From NCBI GenBank assembly GCA_965240325.2, contig OZ251240.1, positions 682,001-746,000 on the forward strand: a DNA stretch of 64,000 bases, written 5' to 3'. The translations under genes were made by a program, and so were the position numbers. Below are positions 1-51,993 of the stretch, one piece after another. A model generated the notes under the pieces. That model ran no database searches. It had not been told where the DNA came from and saw only the letters and a program-made list of their open reading frames with translations. Within the stretch, counting starts at the first letter, position 1; every line of letters begins with the position of its first letter. This DNA is from Rebecca billardiae RCC1528. Taxonomy: Eukaryota; Protista; Haptophyta.

Positions 1-1264
1 GCAGACGCAGGCGCAGGTGCACGCGCGCCCACAGGAGCTTGGAGCGATAGCAGCACACAGCGCGCATGCATGCGCACCGCATCATCAACCATCACGGCAC
101 CACTTCTTCTTCACGAGCGAGCGCGGCGTGCGTGTACCGTGAAGGTAGTTCTTGGAGTACTTGTCTGACTGGTCCACACTCAGGTAGTCGTCCCCATCTC
201 CGCCTGTGCGGTGCGCAGGGCGTGCGGGTGGCAGGCAGAGGCGTGAGCACGATCGCATCGGATGTGCAACTGCGCAAGCAGCAGCAGCAGCAGCCGTGCA
301 CTGCGCTACCCAGGAGGGCTCGACGCTGACGGACTGCAGCCAGGCAGTGCGCAGGCCGATCGCGACCGTCGATCGACCGATCGAGGCCGAGGGAACGCGC
401 GCGCACCGTAGAACGTGTTGTACGTGATGCCCTCGGCCCGTTTGCCCGCGTAGAGTCGGTCGTTGCCATCCTCTCCGTAGAACACGTTGAAGGCCCTGCC
501 TCCGTAATAAGTCCCCATATTGCCCGACACGTCAGGGCGTCCTTCGCCTCCCACAAAGACGTCGTTACCTGCACCGCCCTGCGTGCACGCGTGGGCATGT
601 ACGCGCGGCGCGCGTGAGGGGAATGGCAGCAGCAGAGGGTGGGCAGTGTCAGCATTGGCGCAGCAGGCAGGGGGACGCAGGGGCGCGTGTGACCGATGGC
701 GAGCTGGTGCATGTGTCTGCTGGCAAGCAGGCCGCGCGCAGGGGCACATGCAGCGCCGCTGGGACTGGCTGCGTCGCCCGCACATAGAAATAATTGAAGA
801 CGTCGCCGCCGTCGTATCCCATGAGGCCGTTCCAGCCCACCTTCCCGCCGTAGCCTCCCTGGAAGAAGTCGTCGCCGGATGTCCCCGTGTACGTGTTGGT
901 CCTATCCGCACCATCCTTCCCTGAGCCGCAGCAGTATTCCCCGCCGTCTTTGCCCGTGTACGTCACTTGAAGTGCGCGGCCGCGCCTGCGCAGCGCGTGC
1001 AGGCGACGACCAGCGGGCAAAGCACCGCAGGGGGGGGGCTCATCCGAGGCGCGGGCCCGCGGGCCTGCTGCAGCGCATCACGGTGGCTCGGCGCAGCGCG
1101 TACCACTGCTTCAGCGCGCGCATCCCCGTGGGGCTCGTCGGGCGGGGACGCCCCGCATGGCCCGGAGACGTCGCGGCGCGGTCGGCGACGGCGAGCGGCA
1201 GCATGCCACTCGCGAGGAGGACGAGCGCCCGCTGCACGGCGGCGCCGAATCCTGAGCTTCTCAT
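1..1264 (-). CDS. RTX/hemolysin-type Ca2+-binding-repeat-like secreted or surface protein, paralog 1 (multi-exon; 3' part runs out of the window)
   Basis: ATG at 1264 gives MRSSGFGAAVQRALVLLASGMLPLAVA (signal-peptide-like). Exons joined by GT-AG introns encode RGRALQVTYTGKDGG...GTSGDDFFQGG...FNYFY, GGAGNDVFVGG...GEDGNDRLYAG...NTFYG and GGDGDDYLSVD...NYLHG (GGxGxD repeats). Collinear with the gene at 49833-51993. Confidence 0.8.
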
Positions 1265-2989: not shown

Positions 2990-5022
2990 CACAGTGAACA
3001 AAAACGGGATTATCGTTACCGTAACCCGTCCGACACGAGCCGATTTTCGGGGAAATTCTCGCGCGGGCCGCACGAGCGCACAGAAGACGCTACGGTGGCC
3101 GCGCAGGCGCCTGACGAGTGCCCCGGGCATGGGACTGCAACATCCCACCCAGCCTCCCCATCCCTCCGCCCCTCTCTGCCTCGCCGGGTTGCACGCGGCT
3201 GGCCGGTCACGTAGCTCGTGGTGAGCCATTCGTGAGCGTGGAGCCCTGCTGCTCAGTGCGGCGATGCAGCGAGGCGAAGCGGCGCGTAAGATGGCGCATC
3301 TTACTCCGAATGCAGTCTGCTGCCAGCACAGCCGCCCTCGCCGGAGTGCCTGGTCGTCACCTCCGTTGTGTGCACCTGTCGCGCGCTGCTGTGAACAAGC
3401 GAAGTCTCAGGCCTCCCCGGAGCCATTCAAACACGCTCGTCCTCGACGAGGCGTGCGCGAGGCACCGCGCGAGCGCGGGAGCGGCCCTTCCTAGCATACT
3501 CCTGCACGGCCATCCACCTCGCCACAGCCTGCCATGTCACACTCCTCCCCGCACGCAGTGCTCGCATGCCGCGTGCAAGTCGGTCGACTGACCTGGTAGG
3601 AGGGTGCACAGAAATATTCGACTGCGAGGAGACGGCGGCGAGCCCACGCGCGCGGCGCCGTCCCGCGCTTCATTGGGCTGTTCTAGACCAGTCGCGCGCC
3701 CGCGGCACCGCGCCCGCCATCTCCGCGTTGCGTGCCAGTCCACGCCGCGCGCGTGGCTCTCGACGTGTGCGTCGAGGGCGTCGTGCGTCGGATTCGTACC
3801 CGCATGTATTCAACAAATACGACAAATCGCCGAGCTGAACGCACCTCGTCGCGCGATGGCATGGTCGCGCTGTGTGTTGTCGCTCGCCGCAGGAAATTCG
3901 GTACGCGACGAGAGCACGGCGCACGCGCACGGCGCGGCGTGGGAGGCGGGGCGGTGGTGTCCTCGAGCCATCCCGCCCGCGCCGCGGTGCGCCAGCCGCC
4001 ACCTCGCCGCGCCGTGGCCCATGCCGCGTGGCAGGTGTCGACCAGATCGACCTTGCCGCCCAACAGAGGGCCGCACCGGAAATTCTGTATTTGTTGAATA
4101 CAGACTTACCCACGTGCCCGCGATGCGGCGGCGCCCGTGGTGGCGGCGTGGCGCGGCGGCGGCGGCGCGGGCAGCCTGACGGGCCAGATAGGGCGCGCCA
4201 GGTCGGGGCGATCGTGATGGGATGGTTCCATACGCATCAGTGCGTGCTCCGGTGCATCTCAAGAGCGCGCTGGGCGCCCTCTCTCGCGCCTATGCCCATC
4301 CCGCGGGGTCTGAGAAGCCTCCCGGTTTGGCCATTGTCGTGCCGTGCTCGGTCGTGGCTGCCCGGCGGGTCGGAGAGGTCGAGGCGAGCCGGGTCGTTCG
4401 CGACGGACGATGCCTATGGGTCATGGCGAGTGCCAGCACGCAGCTCGGGCGCGCGCCCGGCGCCTCCTCGCCGCGCTACATCCACACCAAGATCTGGCCC
4501 AAAAACAGGCTTCAAGAGCGAAACTCAGTCTGGGAGCTGCTCAGGCCGCTGTGTGCGGTTTGGCGGCGTACAAACTTGTGGAGCGGGTGCCCACATGGGT
4601 TGAGCACAATGCTATAGAGCGTTTTTCCGCGAAACACCACTTCCTCGCCTCTCCGCGCGCGTGCCGTGCGGCTCCCGTGAACTCATCTTAACAGGTCACG
4701 TGTGGCCGCCCGTGGGGCGAGGGTGGGCGAGGAGGGGCGGGCGAGGGTGATGCCGCCCCGGGGAACCGCCTTGGCAAGCCGGCCGACGCCTCGCAGCCCC
4801 CCTCGCGGCACACATGCGCGCATGCCCGCCGCTCGGAGCGCGCCATCGATTCGAATGGGCGTGCCCACAACCGACCATGCTCAAACGGCTTCGGCCCGAT
4901 CTTTCTCCACTGTGGCGGCGCGAAGTGCCGCGAACGCGGCATGAAAAAAATTCCCCCGCATCCCCACTGGGCGGAAGTGCGGACGGGTTACGGTAACGCC
5001 GAAAATCGATTTCTTTACTGTG
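2990..5022. mobile_element. Non-autonomous TIR DNA transposon with CACAGT termini (EnSpm/CACTA-like or Transib-like)
   Basis: The left end CACAGTGAACAAAAACGGGATTATCGTTACCGTAACCCGTCCG and the reverse complement of the right end CACAGTAAAGAAATCGATTTTCGGCGTTACCGTAACCCGTCCG form imperfect ~43-bp TIRs. Both flanks are CTATCT (TSD of 2 or 6 bp within a TATC microsatellite). No convincing ORF. Confidence 0.7.
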
Positions 5023-7958: not shown

Positions 7959-10034
7959 CTGCGCTCACTGCCGGCGGGCCGCTTCGCCTGTGTGCGCGCG
8001 CGCGCGTGCGCTCAGCCGCTGCTCGTGCTCGCGATGGACAAGCTGCTCGCCGCCTCCGCCGAGGCGCACGCCTCGCAGGCGGCCGCCGCCGCCGCCGCCT
8101 CCGCTCAGACCGCGCCACAGCCGGGCGCGGACGCAGGAGGCGACGGCGGCGGCGCGCCGTGCTCCGAGGCTGCGGAGCCAACGTGCGCGCGCGCGCCATC
8201 TGGCGCGGCGCAGCCGGCCGACGGCGGCGGCGGTGGCACGTGGCGTGCCGCTGCGCGCGACGTGGCAGCGCAGCTGTACGACGCCCTACTCGCCATCGAC
8301 TTTGCGTCCGTGCCGCGGGTGTGCGCCTAGGGCGTCTGCGGTGCACGCGCCCGCCTCTGCACGGCTGCCTGCGCACGCGCGAGGGGCTGACCGCGCCGCG
8401 CGCCCCGCGCCCCGCGCGCCGCGCCGCGATCGCAGCCGAGCGCCGCACACGCCCAGAGCGTGCGGCTGCTCACGGCCGCGGGATCGCTCGCGCCGCCCAT
8501 GCCGCCCGCGCACGCGCTCACGGCGCTGTGGGACGGCCGACCCGTGCCTCTGAGCATGCCGCTGCTCTCGGCGCCGGAGGAGCTCGCGGACGCGCGCGCG
8601 AGTCTGATCGTGTCGACGTTCGGGCCTGCCACCGGCGCCATCCTGCGCGCGCTGCTGGCGGGGCAGAGGCTTCTCTTCATCTCGCAGACGCAGCGCGCGG
8701 CGGAGGTGTGCGCGCACGTGCTCGCAGCGCCTCTGCTGGTCTCGCCGCCTCTCGAGGGCGTGCTCTCGCGCTGCCACCCGTACGCCAACCTCACCGCCCT
8801 CGCCTTCCTGAGCTGCCCGGGCTTCGTCGCCGGCGTGACCAACCCGATGTTCGCCGCGCGGCGGGACTGGTGGGACCTGCTGTGCGACATCGACTCGGGC
8901 GCGGTGACGCACGCGGCGGGCGGCGGCGGCGGGGCGCACGGCGGGGGCGGCGGGCTCGGTGCCGCGGAGCGCGGCGCCGCGTCGCGCGCCACGCCGCCCT
9001 CCAGGCCGACGTGCGAGCAGGACTCTGGCGGCAGCCGCTCCGGACTCCTGACGAGCACCATGCTGGCAGCGGCGGGCAGCGCGCTTTCGCGCACCGCGCG
9101 CGCGGCGCGCGCGGCCGGCAGCGCGGCCGCGGGCGCGAGCGGCGCGGGCTCGGAGGCGGCGGCGTCGCCGCGCGCCCGCGGCCCGGCGCGCGCCTCGGCG
9201 GACGGCGCGCCCAACGCCGGCGAGGAGGGCGGCGCGGGCCGCGCGGCCGGGGGCGCAGCCGGCTGGGCGGACGACGGCGCGTTTGCGCACGCGCTGTGCG
9301 CAGGCGTCGCCGCCGGCCTGAGTGAGGCGTGGGTGCGCGAGATGTGCCGCGAGCGCGTGCGCGCGCTCATCGCCACCGCGGCCGTGGCCGTGCGCGCGGG
9401 CGGCGGGCTGCAGGGTGCCACCGCCGCGCGCGCGATGCAGCAGGCCGCGCGCACCGCCCGGAGCGCAGAGGCGCGCGCCGTGCTGCTCTGCGCAGCCTCC
9501 AACCCCGCGCTCTCGCGCGCGGTGCGCGCCGCCCTCGCGCCCGACGCGTCGGCGGCGGCCGAGGTCCGACTGGCCGTCACGCGCCTCACGCACGGCGCGC
9601 GCGACGCGCGCGCGCTCGCGCTCGGCGCGCCCGAGCACGGCGCGCGCGCGCTCGGCACGCCGGCGCGCGGCGCGTCGGACGAGGCCGGCGCCGAGCTCGG
9701 CGCCGAGCTCGGCGCCACGCCCGGCGGCGCAGCCGGCGGCGGCGCGGGCGTGCTCTCGGCAGGCGAGGCGTGCGACCTGCTGAGCGTGCTGCTGGGCGCC
9801 GCGTCGGATGAGCGGCTCCTTCCCGAGCTGCTGCGCGCGCTCGACGCGACCGTGCCCTCGGGCGCGCTGGCGCCCGTCGCGACCATGCTGCTCCACACCT
9901 CGCCCGAGGTGCGCGCGCTCACGGCGCGCGTGCTCCAGCGGCTCGAGGCCAGCCCCGACGCGCGGCCGTGCGTGCAGGCGCTCAACGCGTTCTTCGCCGT
10001 GGCGTACGAGATGCAGCTCAGGCTCGGCAGCTGA
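6331..10034 (+). CDS. Afi1/MesA-like protein (Afi1 docking domain plus SPA/DENN-like domain); exons 6331-7086, 8016-8318, 8436-10034
   Basis: N-terminal LVAEFDIDKGS..LAELMLPEGAHNHEADWTYF, then RRGAEVKA, HPYANL and PGFVAGVTNPMF..WWDLLCDI motifs. GT-AG introns preserve the frame. Confidence 0.85.
7212..7956. repeat. Intronic 47-bp minisatellite (about 15 copies) followed by (GT)n
   Basis: Unit GTGACGCTCGCCCCACAACGCACCGCCTGTGTCTGCGTGTGTGTCTG starts at 7212, 7259, 7306 ... 7870, with no spacers. Confidence 0.97.
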
Positions 10035-12368: not shown

Positions 12369-15300
12369 TCAGTTCAGCGGCGGGACCGTGCCCGAGACCG
12401 TCGGGTATGCGCGCGCGGCCGGTGCATGCGCGTGCTGCGAGGAGGGCGCCGCCTCGCCGGAGAGCCCGCCGTCCGGCGCCGCGAGCCCGGCGCGCAGCAG
12501 CGTGCGCGCGTGCTCCTCCAGTTCCGCCTTGCGCTCGGTCACCTCGCGCGCCTGCTGCGCCGCGTGCTCGCGCAGCGCGCCCGCCGCGTCTCGCTCCTGC
12601 GTCATCTCCTTGTGCAGCAGTGAGATGGCGCGCGTGCGCTGCGCGAGCGAGTCGGAGACGGTCTGCAGCCGCGTGCGCTCCGAGGCTGTCTCCACGTACT
12701 CGTGCTGCAGCGTCTGCATGTACTCGCCTGCGCGCGGCGCGCGGCGCGCGGCGCGCGGCGGCGGGCACGGGTCGCAGTGGGGGGTCATGAGGCGATGGCG
12801 CGGCGTGCCGGTGCTGCGCGTGCAGCGCGCGCTGCACGCACCCACGGCCGAGCGCTCCTTGGCGGCGAGCGCGCGCTCGATGTCCGCCGAGCGGCGGTGC
12901 GCGGCCAGCGAGAGCCGCTCGTCGTCCACCTCGCGCTGCGCGTTGAGCGCGCGCGTGATCTGCTGCGCGTGCGTCTCCGCGAGGTCCTGCGCGGCGGGGC
13001 GGGCGCGGCGGGGCGCGCGGTGGGAGCGCGGCGGGCGTCACGTGCCCGGAGTGCGCGCGAGCGCCGCGCGCACGCGCCGCGCGCACGCGCCGCGCGGCGA
13101 TCCCGCGGCGGCGGCGGCGCGGGCGCGCGCCCCCGGCCGCCTGCCGTCTCGGCGTCGCGTCGCGCTCGCCCCCGGCCGGCCGCGCGCCGCCGCGCGCCGC
13201 CGCGCGCCGCGGCCCGCGCAGCTGCCGCGCGCCGCCGCCGCGCGCCGCTGCCGCACCTTCTGCTGCGTGAAGAGCTGGTCGCGCGTGGCGCTGAGCTCCT
13301 TGCGGTGCTGCAGCACGTGCGAGGTGAAGCCGTGCCGCTCGTCGCGCAGCAGCGCGCGCTCGGCGGCGAGCAGCGAGCGCTCGGCGGCGATGTGCGTGAG
13401 CACCTCGTCCAGCGCGCCCTGCGCGCGCTCGCCCAGCTGCAACAGCTCCTGCTGGCGCGAGGCGAGGGCGGTGCGCAGCGCGGCGTGCTCGGCCTGCAGC
13501 TCGGCCCAGCCCTTCTGCGTCGCGCCCCACACGTCCTCCTGCCGCGCCGCCTCCGCCTTGAGCTCGCGCTGCATCTCGGACACCAGCGCCTCGCGCTCGC
13601 CGAACGCACGCTCCCTGCGCGCCTCGACCTCCTGCATCGCGCGCTCTTTGTCGAGCATCGCCTTCTCCTGGTGCAGCACGCCTTTCCACAGCTCCTTCTC
13701 CAGACGGGTCTGGAGGGAGGTGAGCGACTCGGCGCCGGCGTGCACGAGCTGCGCGAGGGAGGAGAGCTGCTGCGACTCGCCGTTGATGTGCCCGATCGCC
13801 GCGAGCTGCGCGCGGTGCAGCTGCGCCTGCGCCGCCATCGCCTCCTCATGCCTCCGCTCGGTCGCACTCAGCGTGGCCTCGTGCACGCGCGCCGTCTCGT
13901 CCAACTGCGCGCGGTGCGCGCGCCGCGCCTCCTCGAGCTCGGCGCTGAGATGCGCGCTCGTGCGCTGCTGCGCGTCGGACGCGGCGTGCCGCGCGGCCTC
14001 GAGCGCGGCCTCGTGGTTCTTCTCCTGCGCGCGCAGCGCCGACTCGAGCAGCGCCTTGGCCTGCGCCATCTGCTGCCGCGCCCTGTCAGACTCGGCGCCC
14101 AGCGCTTCCGTGTGCAGTCGCTCGCGCTGCGCGAGCGCGGCCTCGTGCGCGGCGGCGAGCTCGCGCAGCTGGCGCTCGTTGATGGCGCGCACCGCGCCGA
14201 GCGACTCCTCGTGCGCCGCCTGCTGCGCGGCCAGCCGGTGCTCGAGCAGCGTGATCCGCTCCTGCAGCGCCGCGTCCGTCGCCGCGCCGCGCATGCGCAC
14301 GCCTCTCTCGAGCTCCGCCTCGCGCCGCGCGAGCTCGGCGGCGTGTGCTGCGCGCAGCCGCTCGAGCTCGCGCTCGTGCGCGTCGCGCTGCGCGGAGAGC
14401 GCGGCCGCGATCGACGCGGACGCGGCCGCGCTCACCTCCGCCGCGGAGGGCGCGTGCGGCGCCGGGTGCGCGCACGTGGGCGAGCCGCCAGTCGGGTGCG
14501 GCGGCGCCGCGCGTCCGCCTGACGACAGCAGACCGCCGCCGCCGCCGCCGCCGACGCCGCCGCCGCCGACCAGCCGCTGGCTGCTGCCGCTGCGCGAGCC
14601 GCCGCCGCCCGCCCACGGCGCGTCGCCCGCCGCGCCGCCGCCGCCGCTCGCGGGCGGCGAGGGCTGCGCCTCCGCCCCAAAAGCCGCGGCCGGGCGGCTA
14701 GCGGGCAGACCAAAGCCGCTGGCCAGACCGCCGCCGCCCGACGCGCCGCCGCCGAGCGTGCCGCCGCCGCCGAGCGTGCCGCCGCCGCCGAGCGTGCCGC
14801 CGCCGCCGAGCCCGCCGCTACCGCCCAGCCCGCCACTGCCGCCGAGGCCGCCGAGGGGGGGTCGCGGCGGCTGCCCCAAGGGCGAGAAGCTGCCGCCCTG
14901 TGCGGGCGAGCCGCCCGGCGAGCTCACGAGCACGTCCGCCGACGACAGCCTGCCGCGCCCGCTCTCGATCGGCGCCAGGCCCGCGCTCGCGCCGCCGGCG
15001 CCGCCACGGCGGCCCGCGGCGGCGACGCCCGACAGCGCAGGCTGCTCGGCGCCTGCGACACCGCCGCCGGCGGCCGGCGGAGCGGCGGCGGCGGAGAGCG
15101 GGCCGTCTCGCGGCGTGCCACGCACACCCTGCTGCGCGAGCGCCGCGAGCGGATCCGTGACCGCCTCGCCGCGCTCGGCCAGCGTACCGCCGGCGGCGCC
15201 GCCGCCCGCGCGCCGCCCAAACGGCGCGCCGCCGTCGCCCGCGGGCCCGGGAGGCGGCGCGGGCGCGGCGGCGGCGGCGGCGCCCGGCGCCGTGCGCGCG

Positions 15301-15911
15301 GTCGGGCTGCTCCGGCTCGGCACGACGCCCTCCGACCGCCCGCTCGGCGTCCCCGCGTAGCTCTCCTCGAAGTCGTCGTCGTAGTCGTCGACCGTCGAGA
15401 TGTGGCTGGGCTCGGTGGTGAGCGCGGGGAGCGGCTCGAGCGCGGCGGGGCGGCGCGGCTCGTGGGCGGAGGCGGGCGAGTCGGTGGGCGGCGCCATCGG
15501 CATCACGGCGTCGTCGTCCGCTGCGCGCGCCGACGGCGGCGTCGACACGCTCGCCGCGCCCGCGGGCGTCGGAGCGGCGTCGGCGGCGCGGCGGCCGAGC
15601 GGCTGTTCGCCGGCGCGCGCCGACGACGTGGCGGCGGCGGGGCCACGCCGGCCGGCGGGGGCGGAGGAGGCGGCGATGAGCCGTGAGAGCTCGTCCTCCT
15701 CGTCGCCGCCGAGCGACGGGAACGACTCCTCCACCAGATCCTCCGCGCTGCTCTGCCGGTGCACGCTGCCGCCCGCCGCCGGCTGCACGCTCTCCGTGAA
15801 GTCGAGCGAGGTGAGGTCGACGCTGTCGTCGAGCACCGAGTAGTCCGCCGTCGCGACCGACTCCTGCGGCGAGCGCAGCCCGGGCGGCTGCGGCTGCACG
15901 CCCTGCCGCAT
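12369..15911 (-). CDS. Large low-complexity plus coiled-coil protein (possibly FBF1-like centriolar/ciliary protein); about 3 exons
   Basis: Long ORF with a disordered Gly/Pro/Ala-rich N-half and an extended E/A/R/L/Q coiled coil. Introns at about 12988-13256 and 12728-12835. The family assignment is weak. Confidence 0.6.
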
Positions 15912-16068
15912 GGCAGCCGAGCGTCCGTCCCTCGCACTCAAGGCAAGAGGTGATGGAGGGCGCTTTCAAACGTCAAGCGTCCGCCATCGCGTGCCGGTTC
16001 AGCCCTCGCTCCATCCAGGCCGACGCGCTCAGCGCGCTCGGCCCGACATCGGTCCCCGGCACGCGCAG

Positions 16069-18037
16069 ATGGCGGCGGACGACGGCGCGCGTCTCGCGGA
16101 GCTCAAGCGCGCGCCGGCGTCGCACCTGCGCGAGCCCGAGCAGCTCGAGTGGCTGCTGCACCACCTCGGCGACGCGGAGGCGCGCACTCGCGACGACGTG
16201 CAGTGGCTCCTCTCGAGCGCGCTCGACGGCGCCGCCGGCCTCGAGCTGCTCCGAGGCCCGCTGGCCGAGCAGTACTTTGCGCTCGGGCTCTCGTCGGCGC
16301 ACGCGCCGGCGCGGCGGATGGCGTGCGAGCAGCTCGCCCGTCTCGCCACGCCGCACGAGCTCCACCGCCTCGTCGACCTCGCGCCGCTCGGCACACTCGC
16401 CGCGCTCGTGGCGGACGCTGAGCTCGGCGTGGCGCAGCAGGCGAGCGCGTGCATCGTCGAGGCGGTGCGCGCGAGCGAGCCCGCCGAGCTCGAGCTGTCG
16501 GGCGTGCTCACGCAGGACGCGCTGGACACGCTCGCCGCGCTCTGCGACCGCCCGGGTCGCGACGGCGCGCAAGTGCGCCTGCGCGCCGCCGAGCTGACGG
16601 CTCAGCTCTCGGCGGTGTCGGCGGACGCGCACGCGGCGTGCGAGCGATCGGGCCTGCTCGAGCGGGTGCGCGCGCACGCGGCGCGCGTGTGGCGTGCGCG
16701 AGCGCGCGCAGCGGCGGCGGCGGCAGCGGCGCGGCTGGCTGGCCGTGCGCGCGCCGTGCGCATGCGCCGCGCCCTCCGCGCGCGCGCCGCGCCGCCCCCA
16801 CCCGACCATGCGCCCCCTCACACCCACACCCCCTCACCCCCTCACGCCCACCGCCCGCCTCGCGCCGCGCGATGTGTCGCGCGCGCCGCCGCTTCAGCTG
16901 CGCTCGCTCTGGTTCTCGGAGGACCTGCTCGAGCGGCTGGGCGCGCTGGAGGTGCTGCTCGCGCTCGGCTCGTCCGCGCGTGGCCTCGCCGTGCTCACCC
17001 GCCCCGCCCCGCCGCACGCGCCCGACGCCCTCGCCTCCATCCTCGCCGTGCCGGCCGCGTGCGTCGAGGCCATGCGGGGGGAAGGGGGCGCGGAGGCGCA
17101 GGACCCGCTGCTGCGCCCGCTGCTGCTGCCGCCGGTGCTGAGCGCGGTGGCGGCGCTCGCGCGCGCCGGGGCGGAGCAGGCGCGCGCGCTCGTGCACCGC
17201 GACGCCGTCACCGCCCTCGGCCGCGTGCTCGCCGCGTGCGCTCGGGAGGACCCCGCCGCGGCCGTCGGCGCGGCGAGCGCGCTCGCGGCGCTCGCGACCG
17301 CGCCGGCGCGCGTCGGCCTCGGGCCGGTGCTCGAGCGCGGCGGCGTGGCGCACGCGGCGCTCGCGGAGGTGCTGCAGGCCGACGGCGCGCCGCGCGCGCT
17401 GCGCGCCGCCTCGCTCGACGCACTCGCCGCCATCCTGGGCGCGGCCGTCGCCGCCGAGGCGGAGGCGGCGGCGGTGGAGACGGGGGCGCCCGCTGCCGCG
17501 GCGTCGGGCGCCGACGACGCGCCCGCAGCGGCGCGCGCGGAGGCGCACGCGTGGCTGGGCAGCGCGGAGGCGCTGCTGCACGCGCTCGCGCGGCGCGACT
17601 CCGCGCGCGCGTCGACGGTTGCCCTCGCTCTGCTCGAGCTCGCGCGCGGCTCGGCCGGCGCGGAGGCGGAGGCCGACCCGTCGCTCAGCGCGCTGCGTGT
17701 GCTGCTGGCAGCCGCGCGGTACGGGCGCGGCGCGGAGAGCCTCGCGGTGTGCGCGCCGCTCGTCGAGTGGCTGGGCGAGCCGGGCTCGCGCGCAGGCGCG
17801 GACGCCGAGCGGGGCGCCGGCGACGATGGGCCAGCCCTGCGCCGCCGGCTCGCGCGCGCGCTGCTAGCGCACCCGTCGGCGCGCGCGCTCGTGAGCGCGG
17901 CGCTGCTCGAGCCGCTGCAGCAGACGGCGCGCGCCGGGCTCGGCGGTGGCGGCGCGCCTCCGCTGCCCAACGGCAGCGCACCGCCGCGCGCGCGAGCGGC
18001 CATGGCCGCGGTCGGCGACGAGACCCTCGGCGAGTGA
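16069..18037 (+). CDS. ARM/HEAT-repeat protein, PSMD5/Hsm3-like 26S proteasome assembly chaperone; intron 16666-16897
   Basis: LGLSSAHAPARRMACEQL, VADAELGVAQQAS, VRLRAAEL..CERSGLL and SEDLLERLGALEVL patterns resemble PSMD5. The intron is a phase-0 GT-AG. Confidence 0.65.
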
Positions 18038-49832: not shown

Positions 49833-51993
49833 ATGCGATTCGGCGCCGTGCAGCGGGCGCTCGTCCTCCTCGCGAGTGGCATGCTGCCGCTCGCAATCGG
49901 CGAGCGCGCCGCGCCGTCTCCAGGCCATGCGGGGCATCCCCGCCCGACGAGCCCCATGGGGGTGGGCGCGCTGAAGCGGTACGCGCGCGCCCCGAGCTGC
50001 CGATGCGCTGCAGGCCCGCGCCCCGCGGGCCCGCGCCTCGGGTAAGCCCTCCATGTGGTGCTACGCGCGCTGGTCCTCGCCGTGCACGCGCTGCGCAGGC
50101 GCGGCCGTGCACTTCAAATCACGTACACTGGCAAAGACGGCGGGACGGCCACCGGTGCGGGGGACGGTACCAGTCGGTTCAACGTGAACATGGGGACAAG
50201 CGGCGATGACACCTTCTACGGGGGCAACGGCGGAGCATACAACGCCGGCAACGACGGTGGCAACGTCTACAACTACTTCTATGTGCGTGCGACGCAGTCA
50301 GTCCCAGCGGCGCTGCCTGTGCCCCTGCGCGCGGTCAGACACTGGCGCGCACGGAACAAGTGCGCGGTGCGCCGTGCCAGTCCAGGCTGAATGGCCGAAT
50401 GGCCGGCTGCCGTCCACGCGGACTGGCTGACAGCTACTTCCCTGCCCGCCAGCAGACACACGCACCCGCTTGCCATCGGCTCACACGCGCCCCGGTGTCC
50501 CCGGCTGCGCCAATGCGCGCACTGCCCATCCTCGGCGGTTGCTATCTCGCGCTCCGCGCCGCGCGCACTTGCACCCCTGCGTGCATGATGACGCAGGGAG
50601 GTGCAGGTGGCGACTCCTTTGAGGGAGGCATCGGAGCCTACAGCTACTTGGTGGGGTCGACGGCCTGGTATGGAGGTGGGGCCATCAATACTTTTTTCGG
50701 AGGGGATGGCACCGACTTCCTGGTGGCGGGCAAGGCCAAGGGGGGCAAATCGATCAACACTTTCCACGGTGCGCGCGCGCGTTCCCTCGGCCTCGATGCG
50801 ATCGTCGATCGACGATTGGCCTGCTGCCCACTGCATGGCTGCAGCCTGTCAGCGTCGAGCCCGGGGCGGCACCGTGCACGGCTGCTGCTACTGCTTGCGT
50901 ATCCGATGCGATCGTGCACGCGCCTTTGCCTGCCCTCCGCACGCCTTGCACACTGCCCAGGCGGAGATGGTTTCGACGTCATGCGTGTGGACGACGCGGG
51001 GAAGTACTCCAGGAACTACCTTTTCGGTACGCGCACGGCGCACGCGCCGCTGCTCAAGAAGAAGTGCTGCCGCGCGCTGCGTGCTGCTATCGCTTCAAGC
51101 TCCGGTGCGCGCGCCTGCGCTTGCGCCTGCCCGACCCCGCGCGCAGGGGGCGCTGGCAAGGACTACTTCTTTGCAGACAACGAGGGGCACGACAACTCTG
51201 CTGGATACTTCACCTCGATCTATGCGGTCGACGGCGAGTACGACAAGATCTACGCGAACGATGGTTACTACGACAAGATCTACGCGGACGCCGGCGACTT
51301 TGTGGACGCGGACTCGGGCGATTTCGTCTTTATAGTTGGCCAAGCATCGCCACCGCCGCCATCGCCATCGCCACCGCCACCGCCATCGCCGCCGCCACCA
51401 TCGCCGCCACCGCGAGCTGCTTGTGGCCCCGTGTGCTTCTTCACGGTGTGTGTGCGCGCGTGCCGCGCCCAGCCGCGTGCGCGCACGCATGTGCTCCGTT
51501 GGCGTGAGATTCCCAGAGTCGTGCTGGCGCCCTGCGGACACGCGCTCGTGCATGCGCCCGGCCAGCGAGCTGGGCCGAACGTGGGCCGCCTGCAGCCGCG
51601 TCGCGCACGCGCGTGCTCAGCCGCCGCCCACTCCACCGCGACGCCTGTCTGCCGCGCTGCCCTCGCGGCCGACTGCGCGCGCAGCTGGCAGCCACTCTGC
51701 CCTCTGTCACCAAGACGGTGCTTTGCCGCTTCCTGAACGACTGCCCGGCCGGCGTGCACGCATTCAAGCCCTCGTCCCGCTTCCTCGCGCTGGCGTCAGA
51801 CGACGAGTCCGCTCTGGGTACGGCGGCTCTGGTCGTCGCCGGCGCACTGGGCACCGTGCTCGTCCTCGCGCTCGTCCTCGTCGCCGCTCGCCGCCGCCGC
51901 CTGCCTGCTGCCGCTCCGGCCATTTCCAAGAACATGCCTGTTCAGGATGGCATGACTTCGGTTGCCGAGGAGTCTCGCCAGCCTGCTGCGTGA
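49833..51993 (+). CDS. RTX-like-repeat type I membrane protein, paralog 2; exons 49833-49978, 50099-50282, 50597-50768, 50961-51026, 51147-~51411, last exon ~51684-51993
   Basis: Signal peptide, R-A-L-Q motif, GTSGDD/GGAGGD/GGDGTD/GGDGFD/GGAGKD repeats, DGxYDKIYA repeats, SPPPP stalk and TM GTAALVVAGALGTVLVLALVLVAA-RRRR. The first four introns are phase-consistent GT-AG; the last junction is uncertain. Confidence 0.82.

Follow-up and report, generated by a model that had tools for sequence, protein, structure and literature searches.

Plant resistance genes, with their leucine-rich repeats (LRRs), are recognition families built on a repeat scaffold whose solvent-exposed x positions are hypervariable. 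Snake venom genes diverge by what has been called "segment switching" (ASSET), in which introns stay more than 85% similar and short exon segments become unrelated, by a mechanism that is unexplained (PMC2711939). ASSET is the nearest described precedent for the gene family analysed here, two members of which lie on a 64,000-nucleotide stretch of the genome of the haptophyte alga Rebecca billardiae RCC1528 (contig OZ251240.1 of assembly GCA_965240325.2, positions 682,001 to 746,000 of the forward strand). This whole stretch is called the window below, and positions are given in its coordinates. Both members code for RTX-like proteins: gene A lies on the minus strand at 1-1264, with only exons 1-4 inside the window and exons 5 and 6 to its left, and the complete paralog gene B lies on the plus strand at 49833-51993.

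Between these two genes, and among related copies elsewhere in the genome, the exons that encode the RTX-like turns have diverged by substitution more than the introns that separate them. The best reading of this contrast, to which we would give a somewhat better than even chance, is that diversifying selection has acted on the ligand-facing surface of a cell-surface beta-roll.

Exon and intron divergence in a dispersed gene family

A DNA search of the organism's own 72-Mb genome recovered seven more full copies, on contigs C32, C26, C16, C25, C38, C24, and C39, which together with A and B make up nine dispersed core copies. All five introns run from GT to AG and occupy the same positions and phases in all nine. 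Exon 4 is 66 nucleotides long in every copy, without a single indel, the length differences in exons 2 and 3 are multiples of three throughout, and the reading frame is intact in eight of the nine. A profile of the exon-5 domain adds at least 5 more distant members (E 1e-10 to 1e-18). The original prediction, which rested on A and B as read in the window, had proposed a multigene family with a conserved GGxGxD and NxFxG scaffold, variable residues and in-frame indels between the motifs, and intron positions and phases common to the two genes. All of this is seen in the family; A and B lie where that prediction had placed them, their splice sites are at homologous positions, and the intron-2 and peptide strings that it quoted are present.

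Identities were taken from MAFFT alignments made segment by segment. Between A and B they are 90% for exon 1, 86% for intron 1, 68% for exon 2, 83% for the part of intron 2 that aligns, 61% for exon 3, 86% for intron 3, 76% for exon 4, and 80% for intron 4. The original prediction had put the introns at roughly 75-80% by eye; the similarity over long stretches that it described is there, and the measured values of 80-86% for introns 1-4 are higher than that estimate. Its statement that exons are more diverged than introns holds, with 61-76% identity for exons 2-4. Family-wide, identity is 54-97% for introns and 48-81% for exons 2-4, exon 4 reaching only 55-76% among the nine copies. The closest comparisons give the same ordering more sharply: gene B and the C32 copy have introns 88-94% identical and exons 2-4 67-75% identical, with exon 1 and intron 1 at 94%, and for C25 and C38 the figures are 80-97% for introns and 71-81% for exons 2-4. 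The introns and the signal-peptide exon are more alike than the exons of the mature protein, robustly so in the close pairs.

Gaps make up 0.19-0.24 of intron alignments versus 0.08-0.11 of exon alignments, and the treatment of gaps matters to how these figures are read. Plain pairwise identities were dropped, the aligner being too permissive on gaps: non-homologous introns, used as a control, reached 69 +/- 5% identity at aligned positions, and the identities that this aligner gives for distant pairs are therefore inflated. Across four gap regimes, exon divergence exceeded intron divergence in 36/36, 36/36, 34/36, and 24/36 pairs, the last under very harsh penalties; with normal penalties, all 36 pairs show this ordering. 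In the close pairs A-B, B-C32, and C25-C38, the exons were more diverged in every regime, by 1.4-3.4 fold. As far as substitutions in alignable sequence are concerned, the exon excess is confirmed.

The form of the differences is clearest in C25 and C38. These share long exon runs without a single difference, synonymous sites included, and between the runs lie patches of 2-7 codons in which 2-3 bases are changed per codon. Here short exon segments have been switched to unrelated sequence while the skeleton of the fold is kept. All three bases differ in 4-10% of exon codons, versus 0.5-2.8% of intron triplets. The idea that the patches were copied from other paralogs was rejected, since for most of them none of the nine copies offers a donor; the mosaic exon 6 of gene B is an exception.

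Trees built from introns and from variable exons have nearly the same topology, and gene B is placed differently along its length. It is sister to C32 in the tree of introns 1-4 and groups with C25, C38, and C24 in the tree of intron 5 plus exon 6, each with 100% bootstrap support; the 5' part of its exon 6 is of the "C25 type", and the gene is mosaic at its 3' end. A PHI-type test gave a significant signal for introns (p 0.003) and for intron 5 plus exon 6 (p <0.001); for the variable exons its signal was weak (p 0.013-0.13). Given this test and the conflicting trees for gene B, the paralogs exchange sequence. The 5' segment of exon 6 (51685-51760 in gene B) is dimorphic, reading RAAVRLVVYKAVICFLFNNCPTG in A, C32, and C39 and LAATLPSVTKRVLCLLLNDCPAG in B, C26, C25, C38, and C24, and the distribution of these two forms cuts across the intron tree.

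Codon classes and tests of selection

Codons were divided into scaffold, the 77 columns in which at least 8 of the 9 copies have the same amino acid (Gly, Asp, Asn, or Phe), and loops, which are the remaining columns. Pairwise Nei-Gojobori estimates over exons 2-4 gave ratios of nonsynonymous to synonymous divergence (dN/dS) of 0.34-1.0, with dS two to four times the intron divergence (K). Taken alone, this would make the exons seem older than the introns, and splitting the codons resolves the matter. The ratio of scaffold dS to intron K has a median of 1.4, being below 1 in the C25/C38/C24 clade and 1.8-3.2 among A, B, and C32. Loop dN, in turn, has a median of 3.0 times intron K (range 1.9-5.3, all 36 pairs), or 2.7 on strict columns with no gap within two positions. 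Tree lengths are 1.40 for introns and, for exons 2-5N, 3.5 for dS and 2.1 for dN.

Codon likelihoods were computed with our own code (not PAML or HyPhy) under GY94 with F3x4 frequencies on a fixed IQ-TREE topology. The likelihood-ratio test (LRT) prefers M2a over M1a on all columns (LRT 184, with 29% of sites at a dN/dS ratio, omega, of 8), on strict columns (LRT 144), and for every exon on its own tree (LRT 13-85); with gamma-distributed variation in site rates added, LRT is 22.7 (p 1e-5) and the estimates are unstable. In a partition model with a shared synonymous rate, omega is 0.04-0.09 for the scaffold and 1.8-1.95 for the loops (p about 1e-9). The most telling set consists of 30 securely aligned variable codons that have a scaffold codon on both sides, so that neither misalignment nor segment replacement is to blame for what they show: with a shared synonymous rate their omega is 3.5 (LRT 54, p 2e-13). 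The 44 sites picked out by M2a alternate with invariant residues (+.+.) and fall on the x positions of GGxGxDxUx, NxFxG, and YSxNxLxG, which would be the pattern of an exposed beta-strand face. Exposed positions outpace two independent neutral yardsticks, one being the introns and the other the synonymous changes in scaffold codons next to them.

A number of results weigh against diversifying selection. When gaps are scored as differences, introns and exons 2-4 become about equally dissimilar, at 56-67% identity. Under M0, the whole-domain omega for exons 2 to 5N is 0.60. M1a with gamma-distributed rates fits better than plain M2a, whose signal is for the most part absorbed by site-rate variation. 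When the loops are allowed a synonymous rate of their own, it is 3.8 times that of the scaffold, and their omega falls to 0.83-0.94, not different from 1. The 30 isolated codons, given their own rate (3.3-fold), have an omega of 1.16, also not different from 1. Over both sets, the freed rate is 3.3-3.9 times the scaffold rate and omega is 0.8-1.2. For the isolated codons, a 3.3-fold jump in mutation rate limited to single codons is hard to credit, and we therefore gave weight to the result with a shared rate. The codon code allows single-nucleotide steps only, and recombination among the copies violates its single-tree assumption. Searches for relatives bear on the reading as well: the profile of the exon-5 N-terminal domain gave nine matches among 1.84 billion representative proteins (E 3e-6 to 6e-4) and no relative, the same profile found no relative in metagenome contigs, and a word-index protein search with region 1-70 of the C16 exon-5 open frame had no match. 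Eight of those nine profile matches were inspected and set aside as unrelated repeat or multidomain proteins (fn3, GPCR, PKD, cadherin-like, and simple repeats).

The positive selection that the original prediction had seen in the exon excess stands in part. It gains support at exposed positions, where omega is 3.5 against neighbouring synonymous sites, and not for the domain as a whole, where omega is 0.60; the site-model LRT drops from 184 to 22.7 once rates vary among sites. The comparison of dN/dS across paralogs that it had called for gives values above 1 in the loops only with a shared synonymous rate.

Alternative explanations

The fast turnover of the loops need not be adaptive. Loops free of constraint could be rewritten by complex mutation, that is, by small indels, slippage, or template switching that swap short segments in repetitive GC-rich coding DNA; frame-preserving outcomes would survive in exons as clusters of substitutions, and the same events would appear in introns as gaps. 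A loop omega of about 0.9 with a free synonymous rate agrees with this, as do the patchiness of the differences, the lack of a donor for most patches, the near equality of introns and exons in total dissimilarity, and a mild excess of fully changed triplets that is seen in introns too. Yet exon 4 is highly diverged among nine copies that show no change in its length, and equal-length triplets changed at all three bases are 2-16 times commoner in exons, depending on the pair, where neutral loops should not exceed introns. Nor does segment replacement explain the single x positions that evolve so fast between invariant codons. We consider this account possible but doubtful; were it true, the family would be a warning that, in repeat proteins, positive selection is overestimated when judged from simple site models or from the identity of exons versus introns. 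The contrast might instead come from concerted evolution, if gene conversion homogenised introns, exon 1, and exon 6 while exons 2-4 kept an older divergence, conversion tracts stopping at diverged coding sequence or being selected against in it. The two well-supported placements of gene B and the significant PHI results speak for this, together with the 94% identity of exon 1 and intron 1 between B and C32, a scaffold synonymous divergence for that pair (14/72 codons) above its intron divergence of 0.10, and a G+C content at third codon positions of 0.62-0.68 in exons 3-4, below that of exon 1 (0.82). Set against these are the family-wide agreement of scaffold synonymous divergence with intron divergence, than which it is even lower in C25, C38, and C24, the near identity of intron and exon tree topologies, and the long identical exon runs of C25 and C38, from which it follows that the exons, taken whole, are no older than the introns. 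Concerted evolution of this kind is quite improbable as the source of the pattern.

Two further explanations place the cause outside the loops. Introns could be under purifying selection, as regulatory elements, structured RNAs, or splicing enhancers, while exons evolve at an ordinary rate, and some intron blocks are indeed 85-93% conserved in all nine copies, among them the first ~40 nucleotides of intron 2 and the last 20 nucleotides of introns 1 and 4. These blocks adjoin splice sites, beside which intron similarity peaks, as expected of ordinary splicing signals; a search of gene B against Rfam at E up to 1 gave no match; and the five distant members have no detectable intron similarity to the core family and lack intron 2 altogether. 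Since scaffold dS is only ~1.4 times the intron divergence, the introns look neutral, and the idea that they are unusually conserved was rejected on this ground and on that of the distant members. We regard constraint on the introns as very unlikely, and give as little credence to the view that the pattern is meaningless, the product of misalignment or of an unexpressed family of pseudogenes. Permissive alignment inflates intron identity, as the non-homologous control makes plain, very harsh gap penalties reduce the exon excess to 24 of 36 pairs, and the C32 copy carries a frameshift in exon 6. The contrast is nevertheless kept in close pairs under every gap regime, and exon indels that are all in frame, eight intact reading frames out of nine, and a scaffold omega of 0.04-0.09 show long-term purifying selection on a protein.

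In the reading we prefer, this is a lineage-specific family of predicted type I membrane proteins whose copies arose by dispersed duplication. Since duplication, introns and scaffold synonymous sites have drifted at a roughly neutral rate and scaffold residues have been held by strong purifying selection. The x positions of GGxGxDxUx and NxFxG, which would face outward, and the loops between turns have been replaced 3-5 times faster, through point changes, in-frame indels, and changes to 2-7 codons at a time. Now and then gene conversion between copies has added mosaicism, and diversifying selection on the ligand-facing surface is the most likely cause of the fast loop turnover. Recognition of self and non-self, viruses, prey, or mates, the role that the original prediction had put forward, might be imagined for such a protein. 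Improbable, in our judgement, is a bolder variant, in which the alga would use a calcium-type beta-roll, carried over the membrane by a proline-rich stalk, as a diversity scaffold and rewrite its loops by directed or locally targeted segment replacement, not by point mutation and selection, possibly in connection with virus or mate recognition; if true, this would give microbial eukaryotes an equivalent of the "segment switching" of toxins, or of a repertoire of variable receptors.

Gene structure of the two paralogs

The exons of both genes were searched one by one. In gene A (all minus strand), exon 1 (1104-1264) holds the start codon, a signal peptide, and a conserved pro-region, and its hydrophobic window ALVLLASGMLPLAVA scores 2.25 on the Kyte-Doolittle scale. 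It is followed by intron 1 (986-1103, GT to AG) and by exon 2 (784-985), in which the RGRAL motif precedes the first RTX-like turns with their variable loops. Intron 2 (579-783) is without ~106 nucleotides that are found in gene B. Exon 3 (407-578) reads GGAGNDVFVGG ... NVFYGEDGNDRLY ... NTFYG, and is separated by intron 3 (204-406) from the 66-nucleotide exon 4 (138-203), beyond which the window holds part of intron 4 (1-137). Exons 5 and 6 are at L011:3701-3984 and L011:3205-3501 of the flanking stretch.

Gene B (all plus strand) begins with exon 1 (49833-49978), again a signal peptide and pro-region, and intron 1 (49979-50098). Its variable RTX-like turns are encoded in exon 2 (50099-50282) and exon 3 (50597-50768), with intron 2 (50283-50596) between them; intron 3 (50769-50960), exon 4 (50961-51026), and intron 4 (51027-51146) lead to exon 5 (51147-51445), which holds the final RTX-like turn, a twin DGxYDKIYA motif, a Pro/Ser-rich stalk, and CGPVCFF. 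After intron 5 (51446-51684), exon 6 (51685-51993) encodes a juxtamembrane segment that contains Cys, a predicted transmembrane helix followed by RRRR, and a short tail up to the stop codon, the transmembrane window AALVVAGALGTVLVLALVLVA having a Kyte-Doolittle value of 2.73.

At the end of exon 1 (1101-1109 in gene A) there are two in-frame donors 3 nucleotides apart (GTGGTACGC), and the same site has them in several copies; judging from the sequence, the paired donors could give products that differ by one residue. Exon 1 of the C24 copy was modelled 24 nucleotides longer, which adds WSYYNYY. In C32, exon 6 (L013:5166-5481) has a one-base frameshift between FLFNNCPTG and VHSFKPSS, upstream of the transmembrane helix, and this copy may be a pseudogene or may reflect an assembly error at exon 6. 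Base composition is uneven along the window, with ~80% G+C at 8001-10000 and 14001-18000 versus 63-73% in most of it.

Predicted protein and its likeness to RTX proteins

Exon translations give the order of the predicted product as signal peptide, pro-region ending in RGRAL, RTX-like turns (exons 2-5), DGxYDKIYA pair, Pro/Ser stalk, juxtamembrane segment with Cys, transmembrane helix, and tail. Kyte-Doolittle windows reach 1.7-2.3 in exon 1 and 2.4-2.7 in exon 6, the latter followed by RRRR or RHRR (the frameshifted exon 6 of C32 and the unrecovered exon 6 of C16 being left out). With a signal, a helix, and a basic tail, these predicted features fit a type I single-pass membrane protein, and to this extent the cell-surface location given in the original prediction is supported. 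The stalk varies in length, from ~25 residues in A and B to 154 in C38. Exon-5 tails contain 12-112 prolines, and Ser/Ala-Pro(3-4) repeats of the extensin-like type are present. The stalk of C16 is enormous: exon 5 (L015:4889-6997 and beyond) yielded over 630 residues of (S/A/T)PPPP repeats, within an open frame of 2758 codons.

Exons 2-5 encode five or six GGxGxDxUx-like turns. An NxFxG-like strand comes after each turn, and these RTX-like motifs are interspersed with long variable loops and are not in tandem. The Pfam domain HemolysinCabind (PF00353) matches 8/9 exon-3 translations of the family at E up to 1 (best 2.2e-7); gene B exon 3 matches at E 0.037 with 14.4 bits, under the 23-bit cut-off. 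An AlphaFold2 model was made for a distant member's natural 123-residue exon, in which exons 2 and 3 form one, from a five-sequence alignment; it is all-beta, with pLDDT 77 and pTM 0.73. Its best VIA-align match is to the RTX blocks of CyaA (Z 7.4, 2.1 Å over 75 residues, 27% identity), a score that counts as middling by the tool's own note (Z < 8), and the next matches, at Z 4.5-6.3, are RsaA, an Aeromonas RTX-like domain, AlgE6 R1, and LipA. Foldseek gave no match below E 0.1 for this model against PDB, and a PDB sequence profile search with exon 3 reached at best E ~0.5, to serralysin beta-rolls. Language-model neighbours in ESM-Atlas are bacterial RTX clusters. Neither a C-terminal type I secretion signal nor a bacterial gene context was found for these genes, which have five introns, an N-terminal signal, and a C-terminal transmembrane helix with RRRR. 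"RTX-like beta-roll" is a fair description, but one from which the bacterial hallmark, the type I secretion signal, is missing. The motifs are presumably those of a calcium-binding beta-roll. A literature search for algal or haptophyte RTX-like proteins returned nothing relevant.

Distant members and fragments

The distant members (L021-L025, on contigs C14, C1, C3, C30, and C1) have exons 2 and 3 fused. In place of RGRAL, four of the five have RRSL, three of these as PAGRRSL, which suggests that a dibasic processing site ahead of the beta-roll has been conserved. An isolated fragment on contig C12 (L020 ~3660-3900) covers intron 3 and some sequence on either side of it: the tail of intron 2 and an exon-3-like frame (GAAGDDTFYGGVTGSGANGG...) before it, and the opening bases of exon 4 after it. 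The fragment adjoins AT-rich unrelated sequence, and is therefore probably a truncated pseudogene next to an insertion.

Comparison with known systems

The motifs of the putative beta-roll ally the family with bacterial RTX proteins (PF00353; CyaA, serralysins, RsaA, and the R-modules of AlgE), which share its GGxGxDxUx-type turns; the sites that vary here are x positions of this very motif, and CyaA RTX blocks are the best match of the distant member's predicted fold. Unlike the bacterial proteins, the turns here are separated by variable loops of 10-25 residues, the genes have five spliceosomal-type introns, and an N-terminal signal peptide with a transmembrane anchor stands in place of C-terminal type I secretion. 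The stalk resembles the hydroxyproline-rich, extensin-like glycoproteins of algae and plants in its (S/A)PPP-type repeats and in its wide range of lengths (~25 to >630 residues), and differs from them in linking a beta-roll-like head to a predicted transmembrane helix.

With plant LRR resistance families the likeness is in design. There too a conserved repeat skeleton alternates with replacement-rich positions, in multigene families with exchange between paralogs, although the fold is a different one. If diversifying selection is indeed the cause, this marine-type alga would have a set of variable cell-surface proteins that has not been described before, built on a fold whose other known occurrences are in bacterial toxins, adhesins, and S-layers. 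Such proteins would be natural candidates for the host's part in virus-alga or cell-cell recognition, a field in which few receptors are known.

Closest of all is the resemblance to ASSET in snake venom genes. In both, the signal-peptide exon and the introns stay similar while segments of the mature-protein exons turn unrelated, residues that determine the fold are kept, and the molecular mechanism is unexplained; the changes lie at the molecular surface in the venom proteins and would do so here. The differences are that a glycine/aspartate beta-roll-like repeat scaffold takes the place of a disulphide-rich toxin fold, that the product is predicted to be membrane-anchored and not a secreted venom component, that the host is a GC-rich unicellular eukaryote, and that the introns match scaffold synonymous sites and are not unusually conserved. 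A beta-roll-like, membrane-anchored family in a unicellular eukaryote would thus appear to be a new form of ASSET-like evolution. With nine copies, short exons, and neutral introns among the variable loops, it offers a compact system for the origin of exon "segment switching", a question that is open in the venom literature (PMC2711939).

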